From contig NC_042999.1 of assembly GCF_006345805.1 (NCBI RefSeq), positions 160,704,001 through 160,768,000 of the forward strand: a DNA stretch of 64,000 nt. The letters are read 5' to 3'. The notes under the pieces were generated by a model. The model saw nothing but the letters and a program-made list of their open reading frames with translations. It had not been told where the DNA came from and did not search any database. Below are positions 5,546 through 49,169 of the stretch, piece by piece. Position numbers and translations under genes: made by a program. Source of the stretch: Octopus sinensis. Its lineage: Eukaryota. Numbering within the stretch: position 1 is the stretch's first letter; each line of letters opens with the position of its first letter.

Positions 5546-8305
5546 ATGGAAATTACGCATTCCAAAATGAAATTCAACCAACTGCATATAATTTGGATAT
5601 TACAATTCCAGGTAGCTGCTTCAGCTTTCAATGAAACAATTAACATCAAACACACTTGTTATATCAATAACTTTACAATTTTCTGCAAAAACATTGATTT
5701 ACATAATAAAAACTTAAACTTTGAACAGCTCAATGGCACATATATGTTATATCTTATCGGAACAAATCTACACTCTCTACAGGAGAATGTTTTCAATGGT
5801 ACTCAAATTAAGCACTTATCAATATCTGACAATCCATTAACAGTAATTGACAAAAATGCATTTGGTGGACAAGAAGAATTCTTGGAAAGCTTAGAGCTAT
5901 CAACAACAGATACAACAGAACTAGTTGATTTTACAGCCCTTCAAAACCTGTATAACCTTGAAACTCTTGAAATTGAGAATTTCTATATGAACCAGAATTT
6001 AAACAATTTTACTTCTGATAAGCTAACTAAACTGACAAAACTCTCTTTAATAAACAATAAAATTAAATTCTTCAGCACAAAAGCTTTTGTACATTTGGGG
6101 AATTTAACCCAACTTCACATTACAAAAAATGAATTGGAAAAAATACCACTTCCAGAAATCTTCAAATATTTACACAACTTACAACATCTTGACATGACAG
6201 AAAATGCTATCGAAGAAATAAGTATGGGAAATTTGCAAGAAAATAGAAAACTAGAAAATTTGTATTTAATACAAAACTCTATCTCAAGAGTTGATGAATT
6301 TGCATTTCAAAATATTGAGAACAGCCTTCAACATTTAGACTTAAGTATAAACACAATTACAGAAGATCATCTGAAACATTTTAAAAACCTTTCAAAACTT
6401 GAAACCCTCAACTTCAATTACAATAGAATTAAAAGTCTATCAGGCGACATATTTCAAAATATGAATAAACTGAAAACCTTGTCAGTGACAAATAACCAAC
6501 TTACTAAATTGCAAAAAACACATTTAAAAGGTTTAATTAATCTTAAAGAACTATCTCTAAAGAAAAATCAATTGATCATTGAGGCCACAACAATGACTGA
6601 AGTGCCTCTCTTAGAAATTTTATATTTGGATAATCAAAATCTAAAAGGAACTATGGAAATAAAATGGTTAGAAAATACCAGTGGAACACTGAAAAAATTA
6701 TCGTTAAAAGGCAATAGTTTTAATAACATAGATCTTTGGACAGCAATTAAAACATTACCACATTTGGAATTCTTGGATCTTTCCAAATGTAATCTAGCAG
6801 TAATCCCTGCTTTTGCATTTGAACAGAACTCAAAGCTAAAAGCCATAAAGCTAAATGACAACAAATTAGAGAGTTTAGAGGAAGGTGCATTTCAAGGTCT
6901 ACAAAACACTTTAGAGTCTATTAAACTCAGCAAAAACCAGCTCCAAGTTGTGGACGAATGTGTTTTTAATAATTTCAACTGGCCAGAAAAGGAATATTTC
7001 AATATAGACCTCAGCAATAATAAACTGGTGTGTAATTGTTCTCTTCATTGGCTTCAAGTTCAGGTGCAAGAGTTTATTAAGAAATCTAATGATGTCTTTT
7101 TATCTGTTAATTACTGGAAGTGCCTCACTGCTAATGGAGAGGAATTGATTGCAACTACAAATTTGACCTGTGATAGTAATACAACAGTTTGCCAAGACTT
7201 TGGATCAAGATATACAACACAAACTGCTCAAGTAATTTCAACAGTTGAATTATCAACTATTGGTAATATAAGTACTCAAACTAAACAAGAGACCTCCATG
7301 GAAACAACCAAGGAAAGTTCTATTTCAACTACAAGTTCAACACCTAAACTAGAGACTGCTACGAAAACAACTGAAGAAAGTGGTCTGTCAACTACAAATT
7401 CAATTACCAAAACAACTCCAAAACCTTTTCAGAAACCTAACATTACAATTAAACTTTACAGAGAGGCTTCAAATGTTAAAATATCATGGAATATATCAGA
7501 TCTATCCAGGGTAAGGTATTTTATTTTACAAATTAAGGAAATTCTTCCTAATCAAGAAAGGAAAGCTCAATCAGTACTAATACACAAATTAACACAATTC
7601 CATATATATCCATATTTAAACAGTGAATCAATAATACATATTTGTATCATTGTTAATATGACTGCTAATAGCAATTTAATTGATGCCTGTGATACTTTAC
7701 GCCCAAAAGAAAAAGAGCACAGCCCAAGTACGAGCAGCAAAAATACATTAGAGATAGGACTAGGAATTGGTGTATTTGTTGCACTTTTAATCCTTGTTAT
7801 TTTACTCTGTGTATTATACAGAAATCGTAAAAACAATAAGAAACATATATATGAAGAACCTACAACTCCAGAAAGGACACAAGCCAATTTAACACCAAAA
7901 ACTAAACGTTATACAAGAAAAAAACCAAATGAAACTAAAGTGCCAACCATTTCTGTAATATCTCATGGTCAAGTTCAGCCAGATCAACAGCTTTCTGCAG
8001 GAAGCTACCAATATTTGGATAACCCTGGTTTTACACTAGGTGAAAAATATGAAGAAATTCAGAACCCCCAAATTGTGCAAGATAAAGCAATAGACAATAA
8101 GGAAAATATAAGGAATGGTGGTAAGAAAAGTACTTTCCAAGATCAATCATTACCTATAAATAATTTACCTGCACAAAGAGAATCACATTTGAATCATGCA
8201 CAAAGACCTTTACCAAGTCTTCCAAAGAATGAAGATGGTAATATTTCAAGCAATAAAAATGAAATTATTTATACCACACTTGAACTGGTAGAAAGTGATG
8301 TATAA
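5546..8305 (+). CDS. LRR receptor 1: signal peptide, ~17-18 LRRs, LRR-CT, S/T-rich stalk, FN3-like domain, single TM, Tyr-motif tail (FLRT/ELFN-like architecture); single coding exon
   Basis: 919-aa ORF with LxxLxLxxNxL repeats, CNCSLHWL...WKC cap and TM LGIGVFVALLILVILLCVLY. A splice acceptor (ttatctctcatacag) lies just upstream. The second ATG (5567, MKFNQLHIIW...) is shared with the paralog and is the likelier start. Confidence 0.92.
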   Translation: MEITHSKMKFNQLHIIWILQFQVAASAFNETINIKHTCYINNFTIFCKNIDLHNKNLNFEQLNGTYMLYLIGTNLHSLQENVFNGTQIKHLSISDNPLTVIDKNAFGGQEEFLESLELSTTDTTELVDFTALQNLYNLETLEIENFYMNQNLNNFTSDKLTKLTKLSLINNKIKFFSTKAFVHLGNLTQLHITKNELEKIPLPEIFKYLHNLQHLDMTENAIEEISMGNLQENRKLENLYLIQNSISRVDEFAFQNIENSLQHLDLSINTITEDHLKHFKNLSKLETLNFNYNRIKSLSGDIFQNMNKLKTLSVTNNQLTKLQKTHLKGLINLKELSLKKNQLIIEATTMTEVPLLEILYLDNQNLKGTMEIKWLENTSGTLKKLSLKGNSFNNIDLWTAIKTLPHLEFLDLSKCNLAVIPAFAFEQNSKLKAIKLNDNKLESLEEGAFQGLQNTLESIKLSKNQLQVVDECVFNNFNWPEKEYFNIDLSNNKLVCNCSLHWLQVQVQEFIKKSNDVFLSVNYWKCLTANGEELIATTNLTCDSNTTVCQDFGSRYTTQTAQVISTVELSTIGNISTQTKQETSMETTKESSISTTSSTPKLETATKTTEESGLSTTNSITKTTPKPFQKPNITIKLYREASNVKISWNISDLSRVRYFILQIKEILPNQERKAQSVLIHKLTQFHIYPYLNSESIIHICIIVNMTANSNLIDACDTLRPKEKEHSPSTSSKNTLEIGLGIGVFVALLILVILLCVLYRNRKNNKKHIYEEPTTPERTQANLTPKTKRYTRKKPNETKVPTISVISHGQVQPDQQLSAGSYQYLDNPGFTLGEKYEEIQNPQIVQDKAIDNKENIRNGGKKSTFQDQSLPINNLPAQRESHLNHAQRPLPSLPKNEDGNISSNKNEIIYTTLELVESDV

Positions 8306-8870
8306 ATATGAACTTTTAAAAGTCATCGTATTTCAGTATTATTCACTGTTTTAGTCATTAAGCTGCAAGTATACTGTCCATTATTATTTGAATTTCCTGC
8401 ATTGAAGGAAATATAGTTTTAAATATAATTTATTTTGCATTCCTGTTCTGTCGCTTTTAAAGGTTGTATTGTTTTTCATATATTCAATATTTTTCATATA
8501 TTCAATACCAATACACTAAATCAGTTTTTACAGAGCTGATGGCAGCTAAATAGCAACCTATATGACAGAGAATGGTGTTACTTTATTCTCATTATGGGGG
8601 TTCAACTTCTACAGTAAGGATAAATTTTGTTAGTTAAAAATGGAAGGAGACAGCCTGGTCTATTTGAATTTTTTTTCCTTCGCACATTTAAAAAAAAAAT
8701 TATATTCATTACACTGGCTAAAATATATTTGTAACTCTTTTACTGTATGTAAGAATTTTGTTGTCACCTGATCAGAATAACTTGAAGAGACAGTCTGGCC
8801 TATTTGAGTTTTTTTTCCTTAGCACAATATATTTAAATATCATTGGTTTGTAAAAAAGTAAATTAGATGA

Positions 8871-8914
8871 AACTATGCTGATGAGGTCTAATAGACTGAA
8901 ACATATCCATAGTT
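8871..8914 (+). ncRNA. Minimal type I hammerhead ribozyme motif (stem III imperfect)
   Basis: AACTATG-CTGATGA-GGTC taata GACT-GAAA-CATA-TC-CATAGTT: 7-bp stem I, 4-bp stem II, intact core, predicted cut after C8907. Confidence 0.65.
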
Positions 8915-9456
8915 CTTATTTGCCAACAAAATCAGGCTTTTCTCTCAGCTTGTAGAGAAATTAATTCTTAATTTCTTGAAATTCTCTTTTCATTAAGAGT
9001 GGTCAACATTTGTTCCAAGATTTATATTTACTTCTCCAACTAATAGGGAAATTTCAATTAAAAATATTTTTCAAATGGTATTTTATGTCATCCCCTTAAC
9101 TTACTAAACTTTAATATTGTTCCTCATCAGTAGCTGGTATTCAGTTAAATACTAAATTTTATTTTCAACTGAAATTCATATTCTTTTCTTGAAATATATT
9201 TAAATATATATATTTAAATATCATTGGTTTGTAAAAAAGTAAATTAGATGAAACTATTTCATAGATATCCCAAGTAATTGATTTAAACTGTAGAATCCCT
9301 CACAAAAATTGAATTTGTTCAATGCAAAAGTAACACAAACTGTTGCCACTATAAAGTGATTTTATTTTGTTCACAGGTTTATGACAATATGAAAAAGTAA
9401 AGTTGTAAATCTTCCTCACAGTTGTTTGTAAATTAAGAAATAAGCTAATATCTACA

Positions 9457-9890
9457 TCATCATCATCATCATCATTTAGCGTCCGCTTTCCATGCTAGCA
9501 TGGGTTGGACGGTTCAACTGGGGTCTGTGAAGCCAGAAAGCTGCATCAGGCCCAGTCTGATCTAGCAGTGTTTCTACGGCTGGATGCCCTTCCTAACGCC
9601 AACCACTCCGTGAGTGTAGTGGGTGCTTTTTACGTGCCACCCGCACAGGTGCCAGACGGAGCTGGCAAACGGCCATGGACGGAGCTGGCATGGACGGATG
9701 GTGCTTTTTACATGCCACCAGCATGGGGGCCAGGCGAGGCTGGCAACGGCCACGATCAGATGGTGCTTTTTACGTGCCACCGACACGGGGGCCAGACGAG
9801 GCTGGCAACGGCCATGAACGGATGGTGCTACGTGCCACCGGCACGGGGGCCAGGCGAGGCTGGCAATGGACACGAACGGATGGTGCCATA
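9457..9890 (-). mobile_element. RTE-LINE 3' end (family C) with (GAT)n tail and ~4 tandem ~62-bp units
   Basis: Same 3' sequence as the RTE copy with RT C-terminus at 32936-33655; other copies at 30095-30345, 30420-30710, 39640-39835, 53180-53615, 54890-55030. Confidence 0.8.
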
Positions 9891-10458
9891 ATAATTATAC
9901 AAATATACACTTGATACACTAGAAATAACAGTCAAACCTCTTTCAAATCATATCAATACATCTTTAAAAAGGACTAGGTAATGTAGTCTGCAAAATAGAT
10001 TAAAATTTTTTAAAAATAAAATAAAATAAATGTGATGGTCACAGATCATAGTTCTGCTCATTCAGAGCTGAGCCGAGGTTAGATAACAATAATCTAAAAT
10101 AATAAGAAAAACAGAAATCAAAAACTAAAAACAATTATATGAGAATCAAACCAAAAAGGAAGACATGAAAAGCTGCTTAGAAATTGCTATTTAGATTGAA
10201 TACAGATTCAATAACAAATAATAATAATAATACTTTCTCGTACAAGTACAAGGCCTGTAATTTTGGGGGAGGGCGCTAGTCAATTGCATCAACCTTGGTG
10301 CTCAACTTGTATTCATTCTATTGACCCTGAGAGGATGAAAGGCAAAGTTGACATTGGCAGCATTTGAACTAAGAATGTGAAGGTGGACCAAATACTGCTG
10401 AGCATTTCACCCAGCATGCTAACTATTCTCCCAGCTTGCCACCTTATTACTGATGATG

Positions 10459-10524
<66 letters not shown>

Positions 10525-10538
10525 TAATAATAATAGTA

Positions 10539-10597
<59 letters not shown>
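10459..10597. repeat. (AAT)n microsatellite, ~140 bp
   Basis: Directly visible; further (AAT)n runs at ~11398-11417, 11571-11630, 11857-11884. Confidence 0.95.
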
Positions 10598-10599
<2 letters not shown>

Positions 10600-11400
10600 G
10601 GAAAAAGCACTGAAAAAGCTAAGTGTATGAAAACCCATGCTAAAACTGCTGCCTCAGCAAATACCCAAAGAGAGCTAATAATGCCAATGTTGACAAAGCC
10701 CTTATGGCTAGAGTATTCTGGCTTAAAATCAGAAACAGAAGGGTTTATCATAGCAGCCCAAGATCAATGCCTACCTACAAGGAACTACCAGGCTGACATA
10801 TTGAAGAACGGCAGTAGCCCAACATGTCGTGTACATAAACAACAAAATGAAACCATCAATCATGTTGTCTCCAAGTGGAGTCTTTTTGTGCCTACAGAGT
10901 ATCTCAACAGGCATGACAGAGCAGCACAGTATATTCACTGGGTAATGTGCAAAAACTTGGGTCTGCTCCATGGTAAAATCTGGTGGGAACACAAACCACC
11001 TCTGGTGATTCAAAATGATCACATCTCACTCCTCTGGAACTTCATTGTTCAAACTGACAGAAAGATAGATGCGAATAGGCCAGACATTATATTGAAGGAC
11101 TTCAAACAAAAATCAAGCCTCCCCATTGACATAACTGTCCCAATTGACATAAATGTATCTGTCAAGACCAACCAAAAACTGAGCAAGTATAAAGATCTTG
11201 AAATAGAAATCAGCAAAATTTAGAACCTCAAGACTAAAATAGTACCTGTTGTCACAGGTGCTCTAGGATGATAGCGAAAGGGGCTGATTCCTACATAGGA
11301 AACCCCAAAATGGCAAAAATTCAAAAAATAGTGCTCATGGGAACTGCCCATGTCCTACATAAAATGCTGTCTACGTAATCCCAAATTTTAAAACAAACTA
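10598..11400 (+). mobile_element. 5'-truncated R4/Dong-clade (RLE) non-LTR retrotransposon
   Basis: SETEGFIIAAQDQ, degenerate zinc knuckle (CRV...ETINHVVS), RHD, RPDII...DITVP...KLSKYKDL RLE motif, ending IQKIVLMGTAHVL. Confidence 0.85.
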
Positions 11401-11569
11401 ATAATAATAATAATAATCCTTTCTTATTTTGGCACAAAGCCATAATTTTGAGGGGAGGGGAATAGTCAATTACATCATCTCCAAAGGGTAAAAAGTAAAG
11501 TTGACCTTGGTGGAATTTGAGCTCAGAACCCAGAGGCAGATTAGATTACGCTAATCATTTTACTCAACA

Positions 11570-11629
<60 letters not shown>

Positions 11630-12296
11630 CCTAATAATCCTTTCTACTATAGGCACAAAACCTGAAATCTTTTGTGGGAGTGGAGGCCAGTCAATTAGAT
11701 CAACCCCAGTATGCGATTGATACTTAATTTATCGATGCCAAAGGGTTGAATGGCAAAGTTGACTTTGGCAGAATTTGAACTCAGAACGTAGTGATGGGCA
11801 AAATACCACTAAGCTTTTTGTCCAGTTGCCACCATAGTAATAATGATGATGATGATGATAATAATAATAATAATAATAATAATACTTTCTACTAAAGGTA
11901 CAAGGCCTGAAATTTTGGGGGAGGGGACTAGTCGGTTACATTGACCCCAGTGTTTTACTGGTACTTAATTTATGAACCCCAAAAGGATGAAAAGCAAAGT
12001 CAACCTCAGCAGAATTTGAACTCAGAACATAGCAATGAGTAAAATACCACCAAGCATTTTGTCCAGTGTGCTAACAATTCTGCCAGCTTGCTGCGTTAAC
12101 ACCAACAACAACAACAATTATAATAAATAGCTCTAGTGGATTCTGTAAGAACAAACAAGTTGCTATCTGCTCTTACAGAAGTAAATGGTGGTCTACTTGA
12201 GCTATTTCATAAGGTAGATAATAGGTCTCCACAAAATCAAATCAGTCTAACATCATCATACAATTAGCATCCTAACAATGCCTAAGCTATCTTTAA

Positions 12297-12519
12297 CTCT
12301 TTAGCATTTAAAATAGCCATACCCAGCCCAAATATTCAACCCATTTTATGTTCAAACTAGCCACCTCTTACCCTTACCCAACAATGCCATTCTAAAAAGA
12401 ATAACAAATAAATAAACACTCATATCATTGAAATCTCAAAGCTATGAGATAATGCATGACTAATTTTTAAAAATGTTAATAAATATTACATTTGATGGAA
12501 TAATCTGAATGTTAAAGGG
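12297..12519. mobile_element. piggyBac-type MITE family E
   Basis: TTAA|C(C)CTTTAG...AAAGGG|TTAA termini; copies at 23455-23665, 32843-33775 (split), 36301-36876 (split), 45861-46080, 60125-60776. Confidence 0.75.
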
Positions 12520-13118
12520 TTAATGTAGGCATGCTGTATGATGGTTTAGACTTTTACACATGTGACCTGACCCTATTTTATAAGTAGGTAGAAGATTTTT
12601 TTAAGGGAAATTTAGCCTCTACATTGATCAGGTTAATAAAATAAATGCTCTAATAGATGCTTAGGTACTCATCATAATGGTATAGTAGTTATTCTAGAAG
12701 TAATATAGTAACTAAAATGTTATGATTAATTGAACCTACTATCAAGAAAATAAATCTAATTTCAAATGAAAAGTTAATTACATCCAATATCTATTTTTGT
12801 TGTAGCCAAGGCAGTAAGCTGGGAGAACTGTTAGCACACTAGGCGAAATGCTTAGTAGCATTTCATCTATCTTCATGCTCTGAGTTCAAATTCCACCAAG
12901 GTTGTCTTTGCCTTTCATCCTTACAGGGTCAGTAAAATAAGTACCCCCTCCCCAAAAATTGCTGGCCTTGTACCAAAATTTGAAATCTATATCCATTTTT
13001 GGCTGTAGCCATGAAATACATGCACAAATTTACAAAAGGATCAAATCTGTTGAAAGCAAAAGATGAAAGTCAAGTCTTTTTTTAAAAGAACAATGCTTTT
13101 GAGTGGATTTCAGTTTAA

Positions 13119-13337
13119 CCTTTTCGTTACTGTATTTATTTTGAGATGCTCTGTTTCTTTCAATTATTTTAAATATAACAAAGAATTTAGTAAAATAACT
13201 TAGTTATCATTAAGCTAGTATAAGGAACATAAATTGGGATTCAGGTTTGGTGGTTGATTTTTATTCAAAATTTATAAAAACAAGACCTTTGTACTACAGA
13301 GCCAGAGCCAGTTTTGGCCGGGTTGGTATCGAAAGGG
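13119..13337. mobile_element. piggyBac-type MITE family F
   Basis: TTAA|CCTTTTCGTTAC...CGAAAGGG|TTAA; second copy at 60140-60360. Confidence 0.75.
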
Positions 13338-14361
13338 TTAAATCCCAAGTAATAGAATTGGAGAAGCTAACGCTAAAACTTGAAAATCTTTTCAAATCAA
13401 CAGATTCAGATTCTTTGGTAATTAAACTGTAAATAATCTGTATCTTAAAGAATCAACCTCTTACAAAAATGTACATAATGAAGTTATAAATAATAAGAAC
13501 TTAGATGTCTAAAAACAACAAAAAACAAAATGAACTTTGCCAGATGAAAAACAAATTAAACATGAGTCTGCATGTATTACAGTTGTCTGTACTCGACAAA
13601 ATGCCCCAGCATGGTCACAACCAATGACTGAAACCAGTAAGCAAAAAGAAAACAGTATACACTTCATGTTTCAATTGTATAAATCTTGAAGAATGGCAAT
13701 TGTTAAAACCCATGTAAATATTTGAATAAATGATTAAAAATATAAATATTGATTAAAAATATAAAAAACAATTGGTTTTAATATTCATTTATTCATTTTA
13801 TTTAATATTTACTTTTTTTTTATAATTTATTGAGAAAGAGTGAAAGTTATCTAGTCTTGCCAGTCTAGAAGAGACTGGGAGGTAGAGTAATATTACATTT
13901 AACATTTTATTTCAACTAATGAAACAATGAGTGAACTTCTGGGTGGTCTCTCAGACTGTTCAAAACAAAAACCAAATCTCTCAAACTATAATCTACCACA
14001 CTCCTCTCCAGAAAACAGAATACATTAAACAAAGTAATTCTAGAAGTTCTATGTCTGAAGAAATACAAAATGAAGGGCAAAGTTAACATTCCAGCAATGA
14101 CTATCCCATCCCTTTCTTAAGACATTGTGCAATGTATACCATCTTTTCAAGTTAGTAAGGTTTTGGCAGTTCTTTCTAGCTTGTCAAGTAATTACATAGA
14201 GGCTTATTTACTGACTTGAAAATATATTTGCTAATTTCAGTTAAGCCTATATTTAGAGACACAAGAACAGATTGAAGAAGGAAAACCCCATCCTGCAAGA
14301 TATTCATACCTAACTGAAAATAATAAGCTTGTCAGACACAGCCAAGTCATCATTCATATTA

Positions 14362-14780
14362 TCTTTTACTCTTTTACTTGTTTCAGTCATTTGACTGCGG
14401 CCATGCTGGAGCACTGCCTTTTAATCGACAACTCGACCCCGGGACTTATTCTTTTGTAAGCCCAGTACTTATTCTATCGGTCTATCTTTTGCCGAACCGC
14501 TAAGTAACGGGGACATAAACACACCAGCATCAGTTGTCAAGCAATGCTAGGGGACAAACACAGACACACAAACATATACACACACACACACACATATATA
14601 TATATACATATATACGATAGGCTTCTTTCAGTTTCCGTCTACCAAATCCACTCACAAGGCTTTGGTCGGCCCGAGGCTGTAGTAGAAGACACTTGCCCAG
14701 GGTGCCACGCAGTGGGACTGAACCCGGAACCATGTGGTTGGTAGATAAGCTACTTACCACACAGCCACTCCTGCGCCTAT
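14362..14780 (-). mobile_element. Full-length tRNA-derived SINE family A
   Basis: Minus-strand head ataggcgcaggagtggctgtgtgg...gggttcagtccc (A/B boxes), internal CA/TA tract, (agtaaaag)n tail. Confidence 0.85.
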
Positions 14781-15202: not shown

Positions 15203-16012
15203 ATCATCATCATCATCATCATCCTCGTTTAATGTCCATTTTCCATGCTAGCATGGGTTGGACGGTTCAACTGGGGTCTGGGAAGCCAAAAGGCTGCACC
15301 AGGCCCAGTCTGATCTGGCAGTGTTTCTACAGCTGGATGCCCTTCCTAACGCCAACCACTCCGTGGGTGTAGTGGGTGCTTTTTACGTGCCACCTGCTCA
15401 GGTGGCACGTAAAATAATAATAATAATAATAATAATGATTAAGAGGACACTTGGACAGTTATATATTTAGTTATGGGGCAAGTGAAATTGAAATCGGAAT
15501 TGAAATTGAACCAATCCTATGACTGGCACCTGGCAGATGCCAGGAGCCCTGGACTGGAGATACGTAAAAAGCACTATCCGAATCGTGGCCGATGCCAGCG
15601 CCGCCTCGACTGGCTTCCGTGTCGGTGGCACGTAAAAAGCACCATACGAATCGTGGCCGAAGCCAGTGCCACCTCGACTGGCTTCCGTGCAGGTGGCACA
15701 TAAAAAGCACCATCCGAATCGTGGCCGAAGCCAGTGCCGCCTCGACTGGCTTCCGTGCAGGTGGCACATAAAATGCACCAATCCGACCGTGGCCGATGCC
15801 AGCCTCGCCTGGCTCCAGTGCAGGTGGCACGTAAAAAGCACCCACTACACTCACGGAGTGGTTGGCGTTAGGAAGGGCATCCAGCTGTAGAAACATTGCC
15901 AGATAAGACTGGAGCCTGGTAAAGCCTTCTGGCTTCCCAGATCCCCGGTCGAACCGTCCAACCCATGCTAGCATGGAGAACGGACGTTAAACGATGATGA
16001 TGATGATGATGA
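15203..16012. mobile_element. Two oppositely oriented RTE 3'-end copies (15203-15412 minus; 15470-16012 plus)
   Basis: Both show ccatgctagcatgg and outward-pointing (GAT)n tails; the plus copy has ~5 tandem 67-68-bp units. Confidence 0.8.
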
Positions 16013-17746
16013 TGGTATATACCACATAGTAAATAACGACAACTTTAGTCAGTCCATTAAGTAGTCCTGGGATTGTTCCTGGGTGTATTAATGAATGAAA
16101 GTCTTGCTACTTAAAGCATAAAATAGTTATCCTGGACCCACAACATTCAATGCAACATTTGCAATACACATCCCCGATAAATGACAAAGGCTGCTTTTGA
16201 AGATGCTTAGATCATCATTGAAGGAATAGAAGGGGTTAAGGGGGAGAAAGCTCATGTTCTGAGAGAGAAATGAAAATAGAAGATGAAATTTTTGTTTTAA
16301 TAGTGACAATGATTCTTGTCATTTATGGCCACCAGTTCAATTAACTAAAAGTGAAATGAGCCAAGTCAGTGAGGAATACCCTATGTGGTTATTTGGACCA
16401 TCTTGTATTAGTAACTGACTCTTTCAAACTACTCCTTCATGTCTTACAATAGATTGATAACAGCACTCACTGAATTCACCATCTTTCTTTTCACTATTAG
16501 GAGCAAAGATCATTCACACATTTTCACATAACACAAAAAGAAATACAAACACCAGGAATTGCTTACCACACCTGTACAACATTCACACGTAAACTACATA
16601 GTTCAGAAAGCAAGACAATGCACAAACATACTTAGTGTTCCTAGGCATCACATTTGACCAACAGAAAGAAACAACACAAGCCTGCAAAGAATTATATTAA
16701 ATCCAGCATGGAATAGGTGAATCATGCCTAACCCCAATCTCTTCACAAGAAAAAAAGACAAAACAGCAGATTTTACATAATCATATATCATACATAGTGT
16801 AGAAGCCAAACACATGGACTCAAACCAATAAGGGTGTTTCTACACTGATGCTTGTCCTGCTTGAAATAGCAGCCAAATTTCTCGGCTCCCTGTCTTACTA
16901 TCTTTAAATATTCAAGAAAGGATAATGTACTCTTATATAAACAATACAAAAAAAAAAAAAGAAAGAAAAAAAGAAAACAGAAAACAAAGACACTGTGATC
17001 AGACTAGAATGTTCTGACCACAAATGTACCTCAGGCCAGCTCACATGGTTGGAATGGTATAGCTGTCAAATACACTCAAATATTCTAGATCATACCCCCA
17101 CAAAAAAGGCCATCTGGTTGATTAGTAAACTGTCATTAAGAAATACCCTCTAACCAACATAATAGTGGTCCCTTCTGCATAACTACAATGGTTTTTGCTT
17201 GCTTTAAATAACCAATATGTGCATGTGCCCCAACAAAAGTTGGATACATTTGCCTCTCTTTGATCATTCCTACTGTGTCTCCCCACAAAACACAATTCTA
17301 ATCATTTCACCCAAACCTTTACTTCAGTGCTGCCCAACCTTTTCCGAACATGGGCCGGATTTAAGAAAAAACGATGCTAGTGGGCCGGACTTACATTTCT
17401 AGCCTTTCGTTTTTTAATACAACTATTTGAAATAGTTTGAAAAAGTATTCAGAACTGAAAACATTGATTCTATTATTCTATTTATAGAAATTGTCCATTA
17501 TACAATTATAATTCATAACTCAATTTAAACATAGGGGTCCTACATATGATACTGTTTCTATTACTTCTTCACTGCTATCAAAAAATTATAGTCTCCAGAT
17601 ATTACATGAATACGAAATGACCATTAAAAATTTTGATTTAGAACCTTACATTCTATAAAACAAATTTAACAATTGATCAAGATTAAAAAAAACATTTGTT
17701 CAAATAAATGGCTTATATTTCAATAATAAAACAATTTTATTTTAGA

Positions 17747-18143
17747 CTAGTAGTATCGCCCGGCGTTGCTCGGGTTTGTAAGGTAAATAACTATATAAGC
17801 ATTTTTAGAGATGTAAAGTATAATAGCCATCTCAATATGGCTAACCACAAAGGGGGGGCTGTTACTGTAGCTTTTTACGTTCTGAGATTTAATAATAAAT
17901 TTTTAGAGAGTTACTTCCCTTATATATGCCAAAAATGCATTAAAAATGGGAAAAATTGATGGTAATTTTTTTTTTAAATCGTAGACTCATTGTAGACGCG
18001 CGCTAATACCCAGAAGGGCTCGATATGAATCACGACTATAAGATACCCGGTTTTGGTTAAACTGCACCACAAAATGTAGGAGTAGTTAGGAATCTAAATC
18101 GTAGGAGACAGACAGCACACAACCTCACTTTTATATATAAAGA
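17747..18143 (-). mobile_element. Non-autonomous Helitron (397 bp) nested in the hAT
   Basis: Minus strand 5'-TC...CCCGAGCAACGCCGGG hairpin...CTAG-3', inserted between A and T, no TSD. Confidence 0.8.
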
Positions 18144-20311
18144 TGTATACCAGTAATGAACGAAAATATCAGTGAGAAACTTGAAATTGTTTCGAGTCAT
18201 CAAGAAGCTTTTCAATGTCTGCTGGAATATTTGTTAAGGCCAGTCGGAGTTCATCTTCGAGGTGAGCATCACTCAAAGAATTTCTTTTGTTCGATTTTAC
18301 CAATTGCATGCGACTGAAGAGGTATTCACATATCCACGTCGAACCGAACAAAACGAGAAAGCATTTTGAGTAGCAAGTAAGATTTGGATGTTGAGTGTGA
18401 GGCAGACCGTATTTGTAGAAATCCATCAGATTCCTGTTTAAAAAACTGACTCTTGACATCAAAGTCACTTTGCAATTCATTCAATTCCATTTGAAGCAGG
18501 ATCCACGTCAAAAGGCATTGAAAAAATTTTCAGCTGCTCTTCACAAGCACGGAAATCCTTAAATCTCCTGGCAAATTCTTCCTGCATCCATTTTAACTCG
18601 CTCACAAAGAATTCCCGATTTATGGCTGAAATGTGCAGCTGTTTCTGAAGGCAAGAAAAGTGAGCATAATTGCTGTCAGCAATTTGAGTAATCCACAAAT
18701 CCAGTTTCTTTTGGAAAGCTGTCACCTCCCCAAACAAATTATGGATGAGTTTTTCTTTTCCTTGTAACCGCACATTCAACTCATTCAGCTTGTGTGTAAT
18801 GTCCACCAGAAAGGAAAAATCATTCATCCATTAGTCGTCATCAAAATTGATGCATAAATTTCCTTTTGCTTCAAAAAATGCTGCCACATGTTCTCGAATA
18901 TCGTAAAAGCGTTTCAAAGTACGTCCACGGCTGAGCCCCCTGAAAAGGAATGCCAGAAAATTTGGCGTTTATCTCATCGAGAAAATTTCGAAACTGTCGA
19001 TGATTTAATGCGCGACTCCGAATGAAGTTGACAGCTTTCACGACATTATCCATGACGTGATCAAACTTAATGATTTTGGAGCAAAGTGATTCCTGATGTA
19101 TAATGCAATGGTACCACAATATTTGGTCTTTACTCACATTCAGGGATTCCAGTTTTCTTTGGATAAAACCACACAAGCCTTGTTCCTTGCCGATCATGGC
19201 CGGTGCACCATCGGTAGCAATTCCCACCAGGCGATCGTAAGTCAGTCCCACCTTTTCGAGTGCAATATTGATTTCTTTGAAAACAGCAGCACTGTGCAAT
19301 TTTCTTTCATGGGGCATAGAGCAAGTAAATCTGCAGTGATATTAAAACTTGAATCAACACCTCTCACGAAAATCGCCAGTTGTGGTGTATCAGTTATGTC
19401 AGTAGATTCGTCGATGGCAATGCTGTAAATTTAGAAGTTTTTACGAAGTTTCTTCAACTGCATTTTCGTATTTTCAGCCAGTTCTTCAATCCTTCAGGTT
19501 ATTGTATTACGCGACAAGCTAACACATATTATAGCCTTCTCTTTCTCTGGGTACAGAATTTCAATTGCTGAGGTGATACATTCTTTGAGAAAGTCTCCTT
19601 CCAAAAAAGGTTTCGTGATGCATGCGATCTTTTCAGCAATGATGAAACTTACTTTGGCGTATTTTTTCAATCCATCATCTATTTTCTGAAAAATATTCTG
19701 TTGCGAGACTAAATTCCTTTGAAGTAAAAGTACTTTCTCCTTGCGTTGATCTCCTTCATAACGATTATGGGTCGAAGCATGCTTTAATGTGTAATGCCAT
19801 TTCACATTTTCAACTTTTGGAATTGCGATTGTTTCACCACAGGTCAGACAGAGACATTTTGTATTTGATTCCACAAAGAGATGCAAATTTGTCCATGCCT
19901 CGTTAAACCTGTGATTCCCCTTGTCTACTTTTCTGATTTTTCTAGCCGACGCCATGGATGAACAAAATTTGAAATTTATTGGGAAAAAGAAACTACTGTA
20001 ATTTGCTCATCGGTATAAGGCTTCCGTATCACATGAATTATTCATTCATCCACCAAGAATTGGTCTTCAAGCACAAAATCTAATGAAATTCTTAGGCAGT
20101 GATTTTCCCCATTGATTGAGCGATGTTGTGATTGGCTGCTGGCTCAAGCCAGCTTGACTTTACAGTTTTCAGCCACAACACGGTCAGCATGCTTAAAACA
20201 ATCCCTGTTGCAGATAAATCACGTCTCATAATGACGTATGGAGAAGACCTGCGTGAAGCACACTTCCTCAACATAAAGAGGATACTTTAATGTGATTTTT
20301 TTATGATCTCT

Positions 20312-20714
20312 CGCTTTTACTCTTTTACTTGTTTCAGTCATTTGACTGTGGCCATGCTGGAGCACCGCCTTTAGTCGAGCAAATCAACCCCGGGACTTAT
20401 TCTTTGTAAGCCCAGTACTTATTCTATCGGTCTCTTTTGCCAAACCGCTAAGTGACGGGGACGTAAACACACCAGCATCGGTTGTCAAGCAATGCTAGGG
20501 GGACAAACACAGACACACAAACACACACACATATATATATACATATATACGACAAGCTTCTTTCAGTTTCCGTCTACCAAATCCACTCACAAGGCATTGG
20601 TCGGCCCGAGGCTATAGTGGAAGACACTTGCCCAAGATGCCACGCAGTGGGACTGAACCCGGAACCATGTGGTTGGTAAGCAAGCTACTTACCACACAGC
20701 CACTCTTGCGCCTA
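20312..20714 (-). mobile_element. SINE family A nested in the hAT
   Basis: Near-identical to 14362-14780. Confidence 0.85.
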
Positions 20715-22471
20715 TCTACAAATACATTTTTTGTAATTTGTTTTGCAGATACCCATAAATTGAAGACCGACTAGTGGGCCAGATCCGGCCCGTGGGCTGG
20801 ACACTGGGCAGCACTGCTTTACTTGAACTGTAAACCATTTGAAACACCCAGCCCATTTTCTGTACAGACATCAAATTGTGGAAATTCAAAGTGAATACCA
20901 AGTACATCTACTTTCCCAGTTTAGGTTATGGGCACTGTCCCTTCTTAAAATAACATTTTTAAATAATACCAAACTCTCCAATTGCTACCAACTTATCTGC
21001 CCTACATCTTGTTTCACTCAGTAGATCAGTTTTCAGCATATTTTCTTTGTAACTAATGAAAGTTTTATGTTTTTTTATGCTCCATTTTACACCCAGAGTG
21101 TCCTGTTACATTAGTGATATAGATCATAATGTATCCTTTGACGATATTTGTATGACTAAGTTTTTGATCATTTGTTATAAACATCAGAAAGGGTTCTTTC
21201 TCAAGTATTCAAGAAAATTTACTATTACTATGTTCATTATATACTTTATTTAGTCAATGAACGATGTCCATGAACAATGAACAAAAAAATATTTTATGTA
21301 AAGGTTGGTATTTGTGACACCTAAGCACTTGTCATTCTGAAGAAACTGACTAGTAACAACTGACAATGGTTTCTTATGTCAACTTACCTGTCTTACAAAG
21401 CCCATCCCAGATTGCCATAAAAGGACAACAAAGCTATTTCCTCACCATAGAAGGTAGTTGGTCTACTACTATATTGTAAGTAGCCAAGACAATTATTAAT
21501 GATACTCCTCTACAGTACAAGGAAATCTCCACTTGTTATTCATATGGATTACAACAATGGATGATGATCACTTTTGCAACAGAAATGGAAACATTGTTAA
21601 ATTACAAATAAATTATACTTTAAGATTGACAAGAAGGTAAGGTAAGGTTTTATTTTTACAGTGTAGTTTTTTGACCTGTAGCTAGCTTTAGTTTAGATCA
21701 AGACAGGTTTTTACTTCAAAGTTATTTGTTCAGATGACATGTATACAAAGTGACTATTATTAATGCTATTTCCCCTTCAACTTTGTTTCCATTCATTAAG
21801 GAACCTACTTGCAATTTTATCACGTATTTAGGTTATGTTTATTTTCGAATTTAAATGTTTATCACAGTTAATTGAGGTCAGACTTATTATTTTTCCAAAG
21901 TGAGTGATTATATACATAACACACGCAAAATATTCTCAGTCATTGAGTTTCATTAATGAATAAAATAAATTTCCAGTAATCAAATATAATTGCAGACTGT
22001 TTTCCTATAAATTTACATATGAATCTATGACATTAAGATTTGGCAATATTCAGTAAGTGGAAGTTTCATGATCAAAGGAATAAACTTTTAAGGACAAAAT
22101 TAAAAGAGGTCAAGTATATCTAAAAACAAACTTCATGGCAGATACACAAAGGAACCCTGATATGGTTGTTGAACAACAAGCACTGCCCAAAAATGGAATT
22201 CAATGCATTCTTTACTAGTCTTCTGAAACTGGTGAAATGTATTGGTTTATTAATAAAACAAAAGCTGAGATTTCCATGGGAGAGAGAAAAGTGAAATGAA
22301 AAACAACTTGTGATCAAAACTAGGTTACTTGCTATAGATTTACAATACACATAACAAATTTTAATTTAAAAATTCATACCCACTATATATATATATATAC
22401 CAGAGTAAACACATAAATGTGAAACAAGGTGGAAAAAAAGAGTACTCAAATACCAGTAGTAGAGTAATATG

Positions 22472-22657
22472 CTTTATTTAAAGCAGCAGAAAATTCAACA
22501 AAATCTGTTACTCTGAGTTTCTCGTTGCCATTCATGAGACAGTTTTTGTTAGACAGTTTTTTTGTCAGACAGTTTTTCTAACAAAAACTATCTGATGAAC
22601 GGCAACGAGAAACTCTGAGTAACAGATTTTGTTGAATTTTCTGCTGATTTAAATAAA

Positions 22658-22658
<1 letters not shown>
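22472..22658. repeat. 81-bp inverted repeat, each arm carrying a minimal hammerhead motif (miniature inverted Penelope pLTR)
   Basis: Arms 22472-22552 and 22578-22658. Plus copy: CTGATGA-ACG GCAA CGA-GAAA-CTCTGAG-TA-ACAG. Minus copy has a better stem I but core CTCATGA. Confidence 0.7.
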
Positions 22659-22708
<50 letters not shown>

Positions 22709-25172
22709 TATGTAAAGTTTTGTTCAAATTGTAATTTTTTACTTCTTTTAAATATGATAATATAGAAATTGAAATACATTCACACAATACCCTAAGACTA
22801 TATACCACATTATATAAATGTTAAAAGTTATTTTATATGGCACCATGGCCAACATTTATAACAAAATTGTAGCAGTTGACTGAACAGATCAACCCCAGTA
22901 TATTAGTTATTTTAAAAACAATAATGTGAAAGCTAAAGTTAATAGTAGTGAAATTTGAATACAGAAATAAGATGAAAGAAATACTATAAATTTAGTTTAA
23001 CATTATACTATTCCTGGCATTCCAAGAGTCTAAGAAGTTGTGAAAATCTTAGTTGAAACTCAATTCAAACTTCGTTACCTTATAACGCAATTCCTTCGTT
23101 TCAAACCTATTTCTTTATTACCCACAAGGGGCTAAACACAGAGCGGACAAACAAGGACAGACATAGGTATTAAATCGATTACATCGACCCCCAGTGGGTA
23201 ACTGGTACTTAATTTATCGACCCCGAAAGGATGAAAGGTAAAGTCGACCTCGGCGGAATTTGAACTCACAACGTAACGCACACGAAATACCGCTAAGCAT
23301 TTCGCCCGGCGTGCTAACGATTCTGCTAGCTCGCCTTGGTTTCAAACCGATTAACAATACGTTGAATTACATTAGGTTAGAATCAAACCTAAGAAACACA
23401 AAGAATCCACTGCAGTTATTGAAACAACATCATTATGGAATTATCCATATTTAACCCTTTAGTGTTCGCATTATTTTACCAAAAGTAATGCTTTTTTATC
23501 CACATTGTTTTGAATTAATCATGCATTATCTTGTAACTTTGAGAGTCTGATGAGGTAATTGTTAATTTTTAAAACAATATTGTAGGGTTGGTGTGAGAGA
23601 CCAGATCTGGCCAGTTTGACCATAAAACAGGCAGAATACTTTTGGCCGGTTTAAATGCTAAAGGGTTAAATGAAGTGGCCTACATGTTTGTGTTTTTCAA
23701 TGCTTAGTATGTGTAGAAACGCACATTATTCAAGTCAACAAAGCAGCCACCATTTGGTCACTTGACAAGATAAAAAAGATAGCAGCCAAATGCCCTCTAA
23801 AATTACATAGTACCATCTTATAAAATGAAGGGTAAGTTAAAAGAGGAAAAAGAAAAACAAAAGAATGGCTCTACTGAATCAGCGCTGGTCTGAAGTTAAA
23901 CTTCAAAATAACTACGACACATATCTATTGTAGTTCCTCAACTAAGAATTTGGTGTGCTATGATAATGACTATTTTGCACTAGCATTTACAGTTTTATAA
24001 ACAATACTATTATAAGTCTAATGTATTGTCCAAGGGTATGTTGCATGCATACAAACATACACAAACACACACTTATATACATAACATGTTTATGCTCACA
24101 TACATTCAAATGGACATTCAGGCACAGACACCTGTATGCATAAGATCCTAAATAAGGTCATCATTTAGAGGTCAACAACATTGTTGAGTGTTTAGAAATT
24201 AGTCATCATGCTGATGACTAGACATTATTATTGCAAGACTAGTCACTGTTATTGCAAGGTTAATTACACATTAATTTTGTATGATTAATTCCTATCATCT
24301 GCTAATGTTGCTAATCAGAAGAACATATGATAAAGTTTGTTTAAGATAATAGCATCCTTTGACATAAATTCAATAATAAATAATAGCATCATTTGATACA
24401 AACTTATTCGCAACCAAATATGCTTGGTAATTTCTTATACATTAGAACTGATAATTGTAAATTATTGTAATGAGGAGAGGTCAAATGGTTAAGCGGATAA
24501 AGTATCGAACTCTATTCGCTCAGTTTATGTGTCATAAGTTCAAATTCATAGCACATGCTTTGTTGTATTTCCGGGCAAGATATTTCATTCCAAGTACCTA
24601 ATTACACTAAATTCTTGGGAATATACAACAGATTTCCTTTGGTAAACAAGAGATACCAACAGAAGACAAACTACTTAAGAACTCTGCTCTGGGTCTTATT
24701 CTTTTAGCCTTCACTATTTACAGGCAAGTCACAAGGTAGTGAGGTTATTTAAAACACTAGCTTGAGTGATTTCATGACTTTGATTGCTACATATTATCAC
24801 CTGCTAATGTACCAATATCCTATCTATTTTGTCTACCTGGCTGGCACTATTCACATTAGACTATTCTATAAGGATTCGTGCCACATACTTCCAAGACCTT
24901 AGAGTCTTCATTTGTAGTAAATTAATTGAGAAACTGTAAAGGAAAATAGGACACACTTCTTACTCTTTTTAAAGATATTTCATTTACCCTTTTACATCAT
25001 CTAGCCAAGGCTGTAAACATAGAAAATATATACAATAATTATATGCACTGATTATAATCAAGATAAAAATGCTTCTAACTTAAATAAGATGTTTACTAAC
25101 AATGAATTCAGTAAGATTCTATCTTTAAAAGTATGTATTTTTTTACAGTTATCAGAACACAAATATTCCAAA

Positions 25173-27700
25173 ATGAAATTCAACCAACTGCACATAATTT
25201 GGATATTACAATTCCAGGTAGCTGCTTTAGCTTTCAATGAAACAATTAACATCAAAAACACTTGTTATATCAATAACTTCAAAATTTTCTGTGAATACAT
25301 TGATTTACATAATAAAAACTTAAACTTTGAACAGCTCAATGGCACATATATGTTATATCTTATCGGAACAAATCTACACTCTCTACAGGAGAATGTTTTC
25401 AATGGTACTCAAATTAAGCACTTATCAATATCTGACAATCCATTAACAGTAATTGACAAAAATGCATTTGGTGGACAAGAAGAATTCTTGGAAAGCTTAG
25501 AGCTATCAACAACAGATACAACAGAACTAGTTGATTTTACAGCCCTTCAAAACCTGTATAACCTTGAAACTCTTGAAATTGAGAATTTCTATATGAACCA
25601 GAATTTAAACAATTTTACTTCTGATAAGCTAACTAAACTGACAAAACTCTCTTTAATAAATAATAAAATTCGTGATGTTAACATAAATACATTTGCACAT
25701 TTCCAGAATTTAACTCAACTTACTATAAAAAATAATAAGCTAGCAAAAATGCTACATCCACAAGCCTTTGAGCATCTGCTCAACTTACAATATCTTGATG
25801 TGAGTAATAATGCAATCACAGAGATAACAATGGGAAATTTACAAAATGTAAAAAAGATGCTGCAACATTTAGACTTTAGTTCAAACAAAATCACACGTGA
25901 TCATTTGGAACATTTTAAAAACCTTTCAAAACTTGAAACCCTCAAGTTAGATAACAATAGAATTAAAAGTCTATCAGGTGACATATTTCAAAATATGAAT
26001 AAACTGAAAACCTTGTCTGTGAGAAATAACCAACTTACTAAATTGCGAAAAACATATTTAAATGGTTTAAATAATCTCAGAGAACTATTTTTAAGTGGAA
26101 ATCAATTGATCATTGAAGCCACAACAATGACTGAAGTGCCTCTCTTAGAAATTTTATATTTGGATAATCAAAATCTAAAAGGAACTATGGAAATAAAATG
26201 GTTAGAAAATACCAGTGGAACACTGAAAAAATTATCGTTAAAAGGCAATAGTTTTAATAACATAGATCTTTGGAGAGCAATTAAAACATTACCACATTTG
26301 GAATTCTTGGATCTTTCCAAATGTAATCTAGCAGTAATCCCTGCTTTTGCATTTGAACAGAACCCAAAGCTAAAAGCCATAAAGCTAAATGACAACAAAT
26401 TAGAGAGTTTAGAGGAAGGTGCATTTCAAGGTCTACAAAACACTTTAGAGTCTATTAAACTCAGCAACAACCAGCTCCAAGTTGTGGACGAATGTGTTTT
26501 TAATAATTTCAACTGGCCAGAAAAGGATATTTCAATATAGACCTCAGCAATAATAAACTGGTGTGTAATTGTTCTCTTCATTGGCTTCAAATTCAGTTGC
26601 ATGAATATATTAAGAAATCTAATAATAACACTTTACCAGTTAGTTTCTGGAAGTGTTTCACTGCTAATGGAGAGGAGCTGATTGCAAATACATATTTGAC
26701 CTGTGATAGCAGTAAAACAAACTGTCAGGACTTAGGAGCAATACAGAATGTAATTTCAACAAAGGAAAAATTTAATAGTGCTAATAGATATACTGAAACT
26801 AAACTAGAAATAAGCCCAATTACAACTCCAAAATCTTTTAGAAGACCACTGATTTCACTTAAGCTTGAAAGAGTGCTATCAAATGTTGTTAGAATATCAT
26901 GGAATATATCAGATCTATTCTGGGTAAAAGATTTCACATTACAAATTAAGGAAATACTTCCCAATCAAGAAAGGAAATTTCAATCAGAACCAATACATAA
27001 ATTAAGACAATCTCAAATATTTCTTTCTAACAGTGAATCAATTTTACATGTTTGTATCATTGTTAATGTGATTGTTAATAGCAATTTAATTGATGCCTGT
27101 GACACTTTACAGCCCCAAAAAAAAGAGCACAGCCCAAGTACTAGCAACAAAAATACATTAGAGATAGGACTTGGAATTACTGTATTTGTTGCACTTTTAA
27201 TCCTTGTTATTTTACTCTGTGTATTATACAGAAATCATAAAAACAATAAGAAACGCGCATATGAAGAACCTAAAAATTCAGTAAGGGCACAAGTCAATTT
27301 AGCACAAACAAGTAGAGACCACAAAAAAAAGACACCAAATGAAACTAAAATACCAGCTGTTAATGTAATATCTCATGGCCAACTTCAGCCAGATCGACAG
27401 CTTTCTACAAGAAGCTACCAATATCTGAATACGGGGAATTTGAAATCTGAGCATACCTATGAAGCTATCGAAACAGAAAACTCTCCAAATCAATATGTGA
27501 ATGTTAAAGAAACACCAAATTATGATGAAAAAAGGACATCTTTACAAGATTTAAGCGTAGATAATTTCCAGTATAACGGGCAAATACCAAATCAGGTAAA
27601 GAGACCGCTACCGTCTCATAATAATGATGTTAATATAAATGAACCTTTCTATTATAATACAGCCCAAAATTATGCTGAAACTAAAGAAACAGAAATATAG
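25173..27700 (+). pseudogene. LRR receptor 2, paralog of 5546-8305; CDS broken by one 1-bp deletion at ~26527 (pseudogene, secreted variant or assembly indel)
   Basis: ORFs 25089..26540 and 26561..27700 join if one A is restored (aaggatatttc vs aaggaatatttc in the paralog). No other stop. Acceptor ttttttacag at ~25148 precedes the shared ATG 25173. Confidence 0.85.
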
Positions 27701-30700: not shown

Positions 30701-30920
30701 ATGATGATAGGGCCCTGTAGATCAAATAATGGGTTAGGTTTGAAATTCTGATACAACAGCTGAGCTTAACACAAGACACTGAAAAAGGCTGGAGTGTAGA
30801 ACAGCTGAAACATAGTGAAAGTAAGAATCAAGATGAGGAGGACACCAGTCCAACTAATATAAAGAGCATACATAAAATGAACATATTGTGGAAATCTGTA
30901 TATTTCTATTTTTAATTGGT

Positions 30921-49132: not shown

Positions 49133-49169
<37 letters not shown>

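Follow-up and report, generated by a model that had tools for sequence, protein, structure and literature searches.

The DNA analyzed here, hereafter the window, is a 64,000-nucleotide stretch of the Octopus sinensis genome (contig NC_042999.1, window position 1 corresponding to 160,704,001). It contains two tandem genes for proteins with leucine-rich repeats (LRRs), designated copy A and copy B, which lie on the same strand with 17 kb between them and each have their coding sequence in one exon. Copy A (5546-8305, plus strand) is a single uninterrupted open reading frame (ORF) of 919 codons counted from the first ATG. Its likely start is the Met at 5567 (MKFNQL..., with a signal peptide), and its product is annotated as a gene on CM016861.1 of assembly GCA_006345805.1. 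It encodes, in order, an N-terminal cap (LRRNT), 18 LRRs, a C-terminal cap (LRRCT), a Ser/Thr-rich stalk, a fibronectin type III (FN3)-like beta-sandwich, a transmembrane (TM) helix and a tail of approximately 155 residues ending in ESDV. Copy B, also on the plus strand, falls into two parts. The 5′ part (25173-26540) runs from the corresponding Met (MKFNQL...) to a premature stop and codes for the signal peptide, LRRNT and 16 complete LRRs before breaking off inside the 17th and ending in ...NWPEKDISI. The 3′ part (26527-27700), in the +1 frame, is homologous to the last LRR and LRRCT of A, followed by a short stalk, FN3-like domain, TM segment and tail (ETEI end), and has no internal stops when the missing base is held by a placeholder. 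As plain ORFs, copy B therefore appears as one frame from 25089 (shared Met at 25173) to the stop at 26538-26540 and a second one at 26561-27700 in another frame. The LRR numbers (18 in A, 17 in B) were counted by motif register, which the beta-strands of an AlphaFold2 model confirm.

A Pfam scan of A and both parts of B returned LRR families only (LRR_8, E=1.7e-43), and no TIR domain (PF01582/PF13676) was found in A or either part of B at E<=0.01. The AlphaFold2 model of A, based on a 13-sequence alignment, has a mean predicted local distance difference test score (pLDDT) of 69. It comprises an LRR horseshoe at residues ~60-470 with pLDDT >90, a disordered Ser/Thr-rich stalk (549-619), a seven-strand beta-sandwich (626-711, pLDDT 70-83), a TM helix (729-757) and a disordered tail. 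The sandwich could be aligned to a domain of the gastropod homologue P0127 in which Pfam detects fn3 (E=6e-7), the octopus sequence itself giving a weak fn3_4 match (E=0.02). Both genes are thus predicted to encode type I membrane proteins with an LRR-FN3-TM architecture and a disordered tail. The TM segments of A and B are nearly identical and carry no charged residue, and both tails are approximately 150 residues long.

The similarity between the two copies is strongly patchy. Homology begins approximately 8 bp ahead of the shared ATG (at 5559/25165) and peters out after ~8021/27431, and no similarity was detected between the flanks when ~0.5 kb per side was compared. The N-terminal block (N-block; A 5559-6064, B 25165-25670) extends from the signal peptide to the beta-strand of LRR5 and includes a run of 364 bp that is exactly identical in an exact-run scan (5691-6054 and 25297-25660). 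The centre that follows (A 6065-6385, B 25671-25919) covers the convex part of LRR5 through LRR9 and is type-specific: protein identity between A and B is 55% across 84 aligned residues, and B has a gap of 72 bp, corresponding to one 24-residue LRR (LRR8), opposite A 6236-6307. LRR10-12 (A 6386-6583, B 25920-26117) have a homogenized background. In the C-terminal block (C-block; A 6584-7057, B 26118-26590), which holds the convex part of LRR12 and LRR13-18 up to the start of LRRCT, a global alignment over 474 bp contains only three substitutions, all non-synonymous (6741 C/G, T>R; 6830 T/C, S>P; 6934 A/C, K>N), and a 1-bp deletion in B. Further downstream, the TM segment includes a 56-bp identical run (A 7771-7826, B 27181-27236) within a wider similar zone at ~7684-7860. 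The cytoplasmic tails (A 7861-8305, B 27271-27700, the latter with YVNV/YYN motifs) are type-specific past a shared SAGSYQYL region and 37% identical. When the 258 differences across 2264 aligned sites were permuted in 10,000 trials, the longest identical run was at most 116 bp, far below the 364 bp observed, so the heterogeneity of identity is not due to chance.

Most of this pattern had been described in the initial annotation, made from the letters of the window. The alternation of near-identical and diverged segments, the 364-bp and 474-bp blocks, the similar TM segments, the diverged stalk and tail, the dissimilar flanks and a centre that is about half identical and differs by a whole repeat were all recovered at the same positions. 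Two details had to be amended. The identity of the 364-bp block, read there as LRR1-4, holds, and by motif register the N-block reaches the beta-strand of LRR5. The three substitutions and one indel of the 474-bp block are likewise as described, but the indel is a frameshift that breaks B, so that the two genes as assembled are not both intact coding sequences.

Block-wise synonymous divergence (dS, by the Nei-Gojobori method) was calculated from an alignment of six proteins and a codon alignment of five sequences, in which a placeholder filled the position of the base missing from B. In O. sinensis, dS between the two copies varies ~80-fold along the gene, which bears out the proposal that divergence is not uniform: it is 0.011 in the C-block, 0.042 in the N-block, 0.08 in the juxtamembrane and TM region (0.41 in Argonauta), 0.11 in LRR10-12, 0.31-0.38 in the stalk, FN3 domain and rest of LRRCT (FN3 0.34), 0.58 in the tail and 0.86 in the centre. 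As a yardstick, dS between the B orthologues of O. sinensis and Octopus bimaculoides is 0.08-0.13 over the LRR blocks (N-block 0.110, C-block 0.112), and that between Octopus and Argonauta is ~0.8-1.2. On these values, the end blocks are younger than the split between O. sinensis and O. bimaculoides, and the centre dates back at least roughly to the separation of Octopus and Argonauta, for which fossils give a lower bound of ~29 million years ago (PMC12682272). Divergence between Octopus orthologues is ~4-5% per site, so that a stretch of 364 bp should have accumulated ~16 differences after the two species separated; there are none, and the last event in the N-block therefore probably falls within about the last sixth of that interval. 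In addition, the GC content at third codon positions is ~0.30 in the homogenized blocks (5559-7057, 25165-26590) and 0.14-0.25 in the centre, stalk, FN3 domain and tail of all five sequences. This is suggestive of GC-biased gene conversion, with which it would fit, but it is confounded by amino-acid composition.

Homologues of both types were identified in two other octopods. In O. bimaculoides, they are P0001, a partial A-type model (628 aa, 2015) that skips the stalk, FN3 domain and TM segment, and P0002, a B-type protein of 848 aa; a full-length NCBI protein for A of this species was absent from the protein collection searched. The DNA of the O. bimaculoides B locus was analyzed with 10-kb flanks (L001, which ends ~2.5 kb short of A). 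In Argonauta hians, P0003 (A-type, 915 aa) and P0004 (B-type, 839 aa) are encoded on one contig with ~11 kb between them. In both O. sinensis and Argonauta, A lies upstream of B on the same strand, inside the span of an ATG2 gene. Neither of the B orthologues, P0002 and P0004, is interrupted. The identical 24-residue LRR is missing at the same position in all three B copies, and the long stalk is present in A of O. sinensis and Argonauta, the region being skipped by the O. bimaculoides model.

The distribution of informative protein sites in quartets, written as type:species, follows the same segments. For the N-block, centre, LRR10-12, C-block and tail, in that order, the counts are 2:9, 24:0, 8:0, 0:6 and 43:0 between O. 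sinensis and O. bimaculoides, and 0:55, 2:0, 1:6, 0:56 and 4:1 between O. sinensis and Argonauta, for which the TM segment gives 0:11. Sites were also polarized with an outgroup (P0121, 871 aa, 18 LRRs) that combines an A-like KTKRY motif with a B-like YVNV...TTI end. In this analysis, the N-block has 16 species synapomorphies and the C-block 15, with no type synapomorphy in either, and the centre has four B-synapomorphies and no species synapomorphy. Hence, paralogues are closer than orthologues in the end blocks, in more than one lineage independently, and the other segments group by orthology within Octopus; cross-genus support for orthology of the centre and tail is weaker (four synapomorphies and shared indels). 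B tails are 48% identical between genera, and A and B tails 25-37%. In Argonauta, whose sequence comes from an independent assembly, stretches of DNA are likewise identical between A and B, with lengths of 72, 141 and 215 nt in the N-block and 478 and 191 nt in the C-block. On its 3′ side, the N-block of this pair stops almost at the codon where that of Octopus does (alignment column 157 vs. 165), whereas the edges of the C-block differ (columns 306-529 vs. 351-508), and the TM region is homogenized in Octopus but not in Argonauta. A 9-residue partial duplication in the LRR10 loop of Argonauta A (L002; ITSLAGDNH-ITSLGGN) is found in no other copy. A search for decapodiform orthologues with the C-terminal half of P0121 gave a single Logan fragment.

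The initial annotation had also proposed a hypervariable, diversifying ligand-binding core, and for the centre this did not hold. Identity of O. sinensis to O. bimaculoides in the centre is 89% for A and 87% for B, which is similar to the N-block (89% and 92%) and slightly lower than in the C-block (94% and 92%). Its ratio of non-synonymous to synonymous divergence (dN/dS) is 0.41 between B orthologues, 0.22 between the A copies of Octopus and Argonauta, and 0.34 between paralogues. The A/B differences in LRR5-9 are spread evenly over the two faces, affecting 7 of 20 concave x positions and 25 of 52 convex or loop positions. The centre consists of two conserved types under purifying selection rather than of a diversifying core. 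The placement of variable sites on the concave face was upheld for LRR10-12, where A and B differ at 8 of 15 concave x positions compared with 4 of 41 convex or loop positions (Fisher p=0.0013). The enrichment recurs in O. bimaculoides (p=0.003), and a weaker one is present in Argonauta (p=0.04), where it is seen for LRR10. In these repeats, dN/dS is 0.99 between A and B and 0.34 between orthologues. The type-specific concave residues (A/B: NFNY/KLDN in LRR10, and KK/SG) are mostly the same in both Octopus species; the T/R difference in LRR11 is specific to O. sinensis, since A of O. bimaculoides has R, as do both B copies. The background of LRR10-12 was homogenized around the time of the sinensis-bimaculoides split, and the pattern would fit selection that keeps, or soon restores, type-specific contact residues on this background.

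Considering the block-wise dS, the quartets and the shared deletion of one LRR together, it is very probable that A and B are old duplicates subject to recurrent, lineage-independent segmental gene conversion, from which the centre and the tails escape as two conserved types. In this respect, the earlier proposal of an old pair with ongoing segmental conversion and a protected centre is supported by the quartet counts, the synapomorphies and the one-LRR deletion. On this reading, the duplication predates the split between Octopus and Argonauta. Non-allelic conversion has since overwritten two stretches independently in each lineage, one from the signal peptide to LRR5 (the N-terminal block) and one from LRR13 to LRRCT (the C-terminal block), and in Octopus the TM region as well, the last events in O. 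sinensis being very recent. The centre (LRR6-9, with its one-repeat length difference) and the tails have escaped. Conversion in the centre may be blocked by accumulated divergence and the 72-bp heterology, and also by selection against losing two distinct binding surfaces. If so, the two proteins may share a scaffold, and perhaps a partner interface, and differ in central ligand specificity and in the coupling of their tails. A more ambitious version, in which the genes form an octopod-specific two-receptor module whose common scaffold or partner interface (both LRR ends and, in Octopus, the TM segment) is kept identical by conversion while selection has kept two specificities and tails apart for tens of millions of years, is rather unlikely on present evidence. 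If true, it would give molluscs a counterpart to TLR1/TLR6 or to paired receptors, and one member of such a module may be dispensable in some species, B being frameshifted in O. sinensis and A being represented in O. bimaculoides by a partial model.

Several points weigh against old duplication with recurrent conversion. Nucleotide quartet sites between Octopus and Argonauta are near saturation in the centre and tail (15:9:5 and 16:10:8), and the centre of O. sinensis B is nearer to that of O. sinensis A (55%) than to that of Argonauta B (48%), so that the pre-split age of the duplication leans mainly on shared indels, a few synapomorphies and synteny. A of O. bimaculoides entered the analysis as the partial protein model P0001, without DNA. 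Block identity could be slightly inflated by short-read polishing across paralogues, and the frameshift of B was read from the assembly; what is said of the function of A and B is inferred. The centre identities and the low nucleotide support for type in the centre (15:9:5) are what would be expected if Octopus and Argonauta had duplicated the gene separately, with parallel loss of an LRR and parallel tail changes and without long-term conversion. This is improbable, however, given that all B copies lack the same 24 residues, both complete A copies (O. sinensis and Argonauta) have the long stalk, B tails are more similar across genera than A and B tails are to each other, the polarized centre has four B-synapomorphies against none for species, and O. 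sinensis and Argonauta agree in how the genes are ordered and oriented inside the ATG2 span. Moreover, conversion would be needed in any case, because the dS of the centre in Octopus (0.86) is far above that of the end blocks (0.01-0.04). Still less probable is a recent duplication followed by fast diversifying selection on the centre and tails. Its best evidence is the dN/dS of ~1 between A and B in LRR10-12, with differences at concave positions, and the non-synonymous nature of all three C-block differences. The dS of the centre, ~8 times that of orthologues, indicates a centre that is old rather than fast, and its low dN/dS (0.2-0.4), its conservation between species, the absence of concave-face enrichment there and the presence of both types in Argonauta speak against it as well. 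It is hardly credible that the identical blocks are an artefact of paralogue collapse or cross-mapping during assembly or polishing. The sequence is a single long-read-based haploid consensus with a 1-bp deletion inside one of the blocks, but the two-block mosaic recurs in the independent Argonauta hians assembly and at the protein level in O. bimaculoides, the blocks contain species-specific substitutions common to both copies (9 and 6 sites), and polishing would be unable to make such blocks from sequence that is about half identical elsewhere.

The status of copy B in O. sinensis has to be weighed separately. One A is lost between 26526 and 26527 relative to A 6993 in the codon alignment, which changes AAG GAA TAT to AAG G-A TAT and leads to the stop at 26538-26540, ahead of the last LRR, LRRCT, FN3 domain and TM segment. 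The GAA codon is kept in A of O. sinensis, B of O. bimaculoides and both copies of Argonauta, and the deletion is unique to B of the assembly. As it lies inside the freshly converted C-block, it post-dates the last conversion. B is therefore either a pseudogene or allele of very recent origin or the product of a consensus error, since the 390 codons 3′ of the deletion are open and a relative-rate test with Argonauta B as the outgroup revealed no excess of changes specific to O. sinensis B downstream (5 vs. 8 in the tail, 2 vs. 3 in the FN3 domain). That B is a true, recently inactivated pseudogene which is still overwritten by, or donates to, a functional A is a serious possibility, although somewhat short of an even chance. 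Besides the position of the stop, it would account for the absence of an O. sinensis B protein from the protein collection searched, and two observations are weak hints of relaxed constraint on B. Two of the three C-block substitutions (T>R, S>P) are unique, non-synonymous and in O. sinensis B, and dN/dS between O. sinensis and O. bimaculoides is ~0.8-2 in the stalk, FN3 domain, TM segment and tail of B (26590-27700 vs. L001), compared with 0.3-0.4 in the LRR part, the counts being small. The B tail has 8 synonymous and 34 non-synonymous differences between the two species, and its dN/dS between Octopus and Argonauta is 0.28. On the other hand, B is intact in both other species, the downstream frame and the relative-rate test show no sign of decay, and single-base deletions are common residual errors of long-read consensus sequences. 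No contigs on record with a truncated B product were found. If B is indeed a pseudogene, the O. sinensis pair would consist of one working receptor and a decaying partner. Together with the partial A model in O. bimaculoides, the frameshift raises the question of reciprocal loss or annotation gaps.

Among known systems, the best precedent for this evolutionary behavior, by analogy, would be TLR1/TLR6, where one segment stays similar through conversion that took place separately in nine mammals, and other LRRs diverge (Kruithof et al. 2007, PMC2077338). In both cases, tandem LRR-receptor paralogues have a segment that is closer between paralogues than between orthologues and has been converted independently in each lineage, tract limits are nearly constant across lineages, and the remaining LRRs are type-specific. 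In TLR1/TLR6, a single C-terminal tract is homogenized (LRR16-19, cap, TM and most of TIR; PMC2077338), whereas the octopus pair has two homogenized ectodomain tracts and a distinct cytoplasmic tail. It is also molluscan and lacks TIR. With Toll-like receptors (TLRs) in general, the octopus proteins share a horseshoe with N- and C-terminal caps and a single TM segment; they differ in lacking TIR and in having an FN3 domain next to the membrane and tail motifs that TLRs do not have. As no copy has TIR, P0002-P0004 are misnamed by automatic annotation as 'toll-like receptor 4'.

The initial annotation had instead likened the pair to paired immune receptors. SIGLEC5/14 and SIGLEC11/16 are adjacent paralogues with a converted extracellular part and divergent cytoplasmic tails. 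In these pairs, the ligand-binding domain is kept identical, and the activating partner combines a short tail with a charged residue in its TM segment, through which an adaptor with an immunoreceptor tyrosine-based activation motif is recruited. The octopus paralogues resemble them in extracellular conversion and divergent tails, but the presumed binding centre is unconverted (55% identity, one-repeat indel), the two TM segments resemble each other and lack charge, and the tails are both long with common motifs; the analogy with paired immune receptors consequently fails on these points and on the lack of TIR. Motifs resembling immunoreceptor tyrosine-based inhibitory motifs (ITIMs) occur in A (IIYTTL/LNYITV) and in Argonauta B (LSYQNL). 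A contrast between ITIM and non-ITIM tails as a signature of paired receptors was considered and rejected, Argonauta B being ITIM-like too. Partial LRR donor cassettes of the type used by variable lymphocyte receptors were not found, as tblastn of A against the 64-kb window recovered the two genes only. The closest described architecture, LRR-FN3-TM, is exemplified by TRIL (PMC6004582). Proteins of the TRIL/FLRT/ELFN type have a capped LRR ectodomain, one FN3 domain, a TM helix and a non-enzymatic intracellular part, as do the octopus proteins, a likeness by architecture; the latter differ in their higher number of LRRs, their mucin-like stalk and their longer tail, in which Tyr/Pro motifs are conserved. 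The matches listed include no named TRIL, FLRT or ELFN protein, and no direct comparison was run.

The family is wider than the octopods. A HMMER search with the non-LRR C-terminal half identified 12 proteins, two of which are the pair's own orthologues; among the other ten, nine of 820-890 aa aligned over the full architecture and one is a 256-aa fragment. They include proteins from Patella and Batillaria and a RefSeq protein, the rest coming from Logan, ENA or JGI. Because relatives of the same architecture occur in gastropods and other molluscs, this LRR-FN3 family is mollusc-wide and not specific to cephalopods. Matches of the full-length protein outside cephalopods are generic, the best being LRR proteins with ~25% identity, and the same is true of sequence and fold matches in the PDB, which are LRR ectodomains such as those of LRRC15, ALS, LGR4/5, LRIG1, GARP and TLR3/8/13. 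Tail motifs of the family comprise KR(Y/F)xK, VISxGQ, SAGSYQ(Y/F)L, RPLPxxP, YxN and Y-x-E-(I/V), and cephalopod members also end in S/T-x-(V/I). The A tail has KTKRY, YEEI, RPLPSLP, IIYTTL and the C-terminal ESDV; YxN motifs are present in B and the outgroup, IIYTTL in A, and SAGSYQYL and RPLPxxP are common to A and B.

The retention of SAGSYQ(Y/F)L, RPLPxxP, KR(Y/F)xK and YxN from gastropods to cephalopods would imply a conserved set of intracellular partners. ESDV (A) and ETEI (B) are class I PDZ-type endings, and the tail motifs read as sites for SH2, SH3 and PDZ adaptors. Owing to the architecture, the deep conservation of tail motifs in molluscs, the low copy number and the PDZ-type endings, the proteins may be regarded as putative cell-surface receptors or adhesion molecules that signal via such adaptors. 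By analogy with many LRR-FN3 proteins, a neural or developmental role would be compatible with the data and fits as well as one in immunity. The pair does not establish a new kind of recognition system; it adds a further case of an evolutionary phenomenon that is already known, in an uncharacterized mollusc LRR-FN3 family. Its value lies in a clean mosaic of concerted evolution, replicated in three species, which marks the parts that can be shared and those kept distinct. LRR6-9, the few concave residues of LRR10-12 and the tails are thereby candidate specificity sites for a ligand search. The analysis also corrects the 'toll-like receptor 4' name and flags a broken B in the O. sinensis reference.

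Both LRR genes of O. sinensis are covered by the annotated span of ATG2 (~2120 aa, Pfam ATG2_CAD), which lies on the opposite strand, and the same nesting was observed at the B locus of O. bimaculoides and at both Argonauta hians loci. Three segments in the window (31674-31881, 33834-34127 and 39402-39552) are conserved with Argonauta and open on the minus strand, and they are probable ATG2 exons judging from this conservation. Their peptides gave no Pfam match, and a search with one of them gave a 98-aa ENA protein and no Octopus ATG2. In L005 (ENA ERZ21867824, ctg102401l, 6562-10611), three ATG2 exon-like segments lie within 4 kb, compared with ~8 kb in the window, and no LRR homologue was found in the 9.7 kb past them; the nesting in ATG2 may therefore be restricted to octopods.

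Other elements were noted in the window. Between the two genes, a segment of 3.5 kb (17324-20817) is missing from the collinear O. bimaculoides sequence and contains a row of minus-strand ORFs (18169-19955), one of which has a Spin-doc-type zinc finger (Pfam E=2e-7); by its sequence it looks like a degraded transposase-derived element. An inverted repeat at 47690-49526 and 50946-52736 has arms of ~1.8 kb that are 93-99% complementary and a centre of 1.4 kb, and a 232-aa ORF (49334-50032, minus strand) overlaps this centre and reaches ~190 bp into the left arm. The whole (47690-52736) may represent a foldback-type element, or else a palindrome created in the assembly. A GC-rich dispersed repeat of ~200 bp occurs in many copies and both orientations (9455-9655, 15203-15403, 15815-16014, 30157-30356, 30543-30708, 32939-33122, 53428-53632 and others), where it gives rise to spurious ORFs (...GAFYVPPA...). 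It is probably an element resembling short interspersed elements and is also present in the O. bimaculoides and Argonauta flanks.

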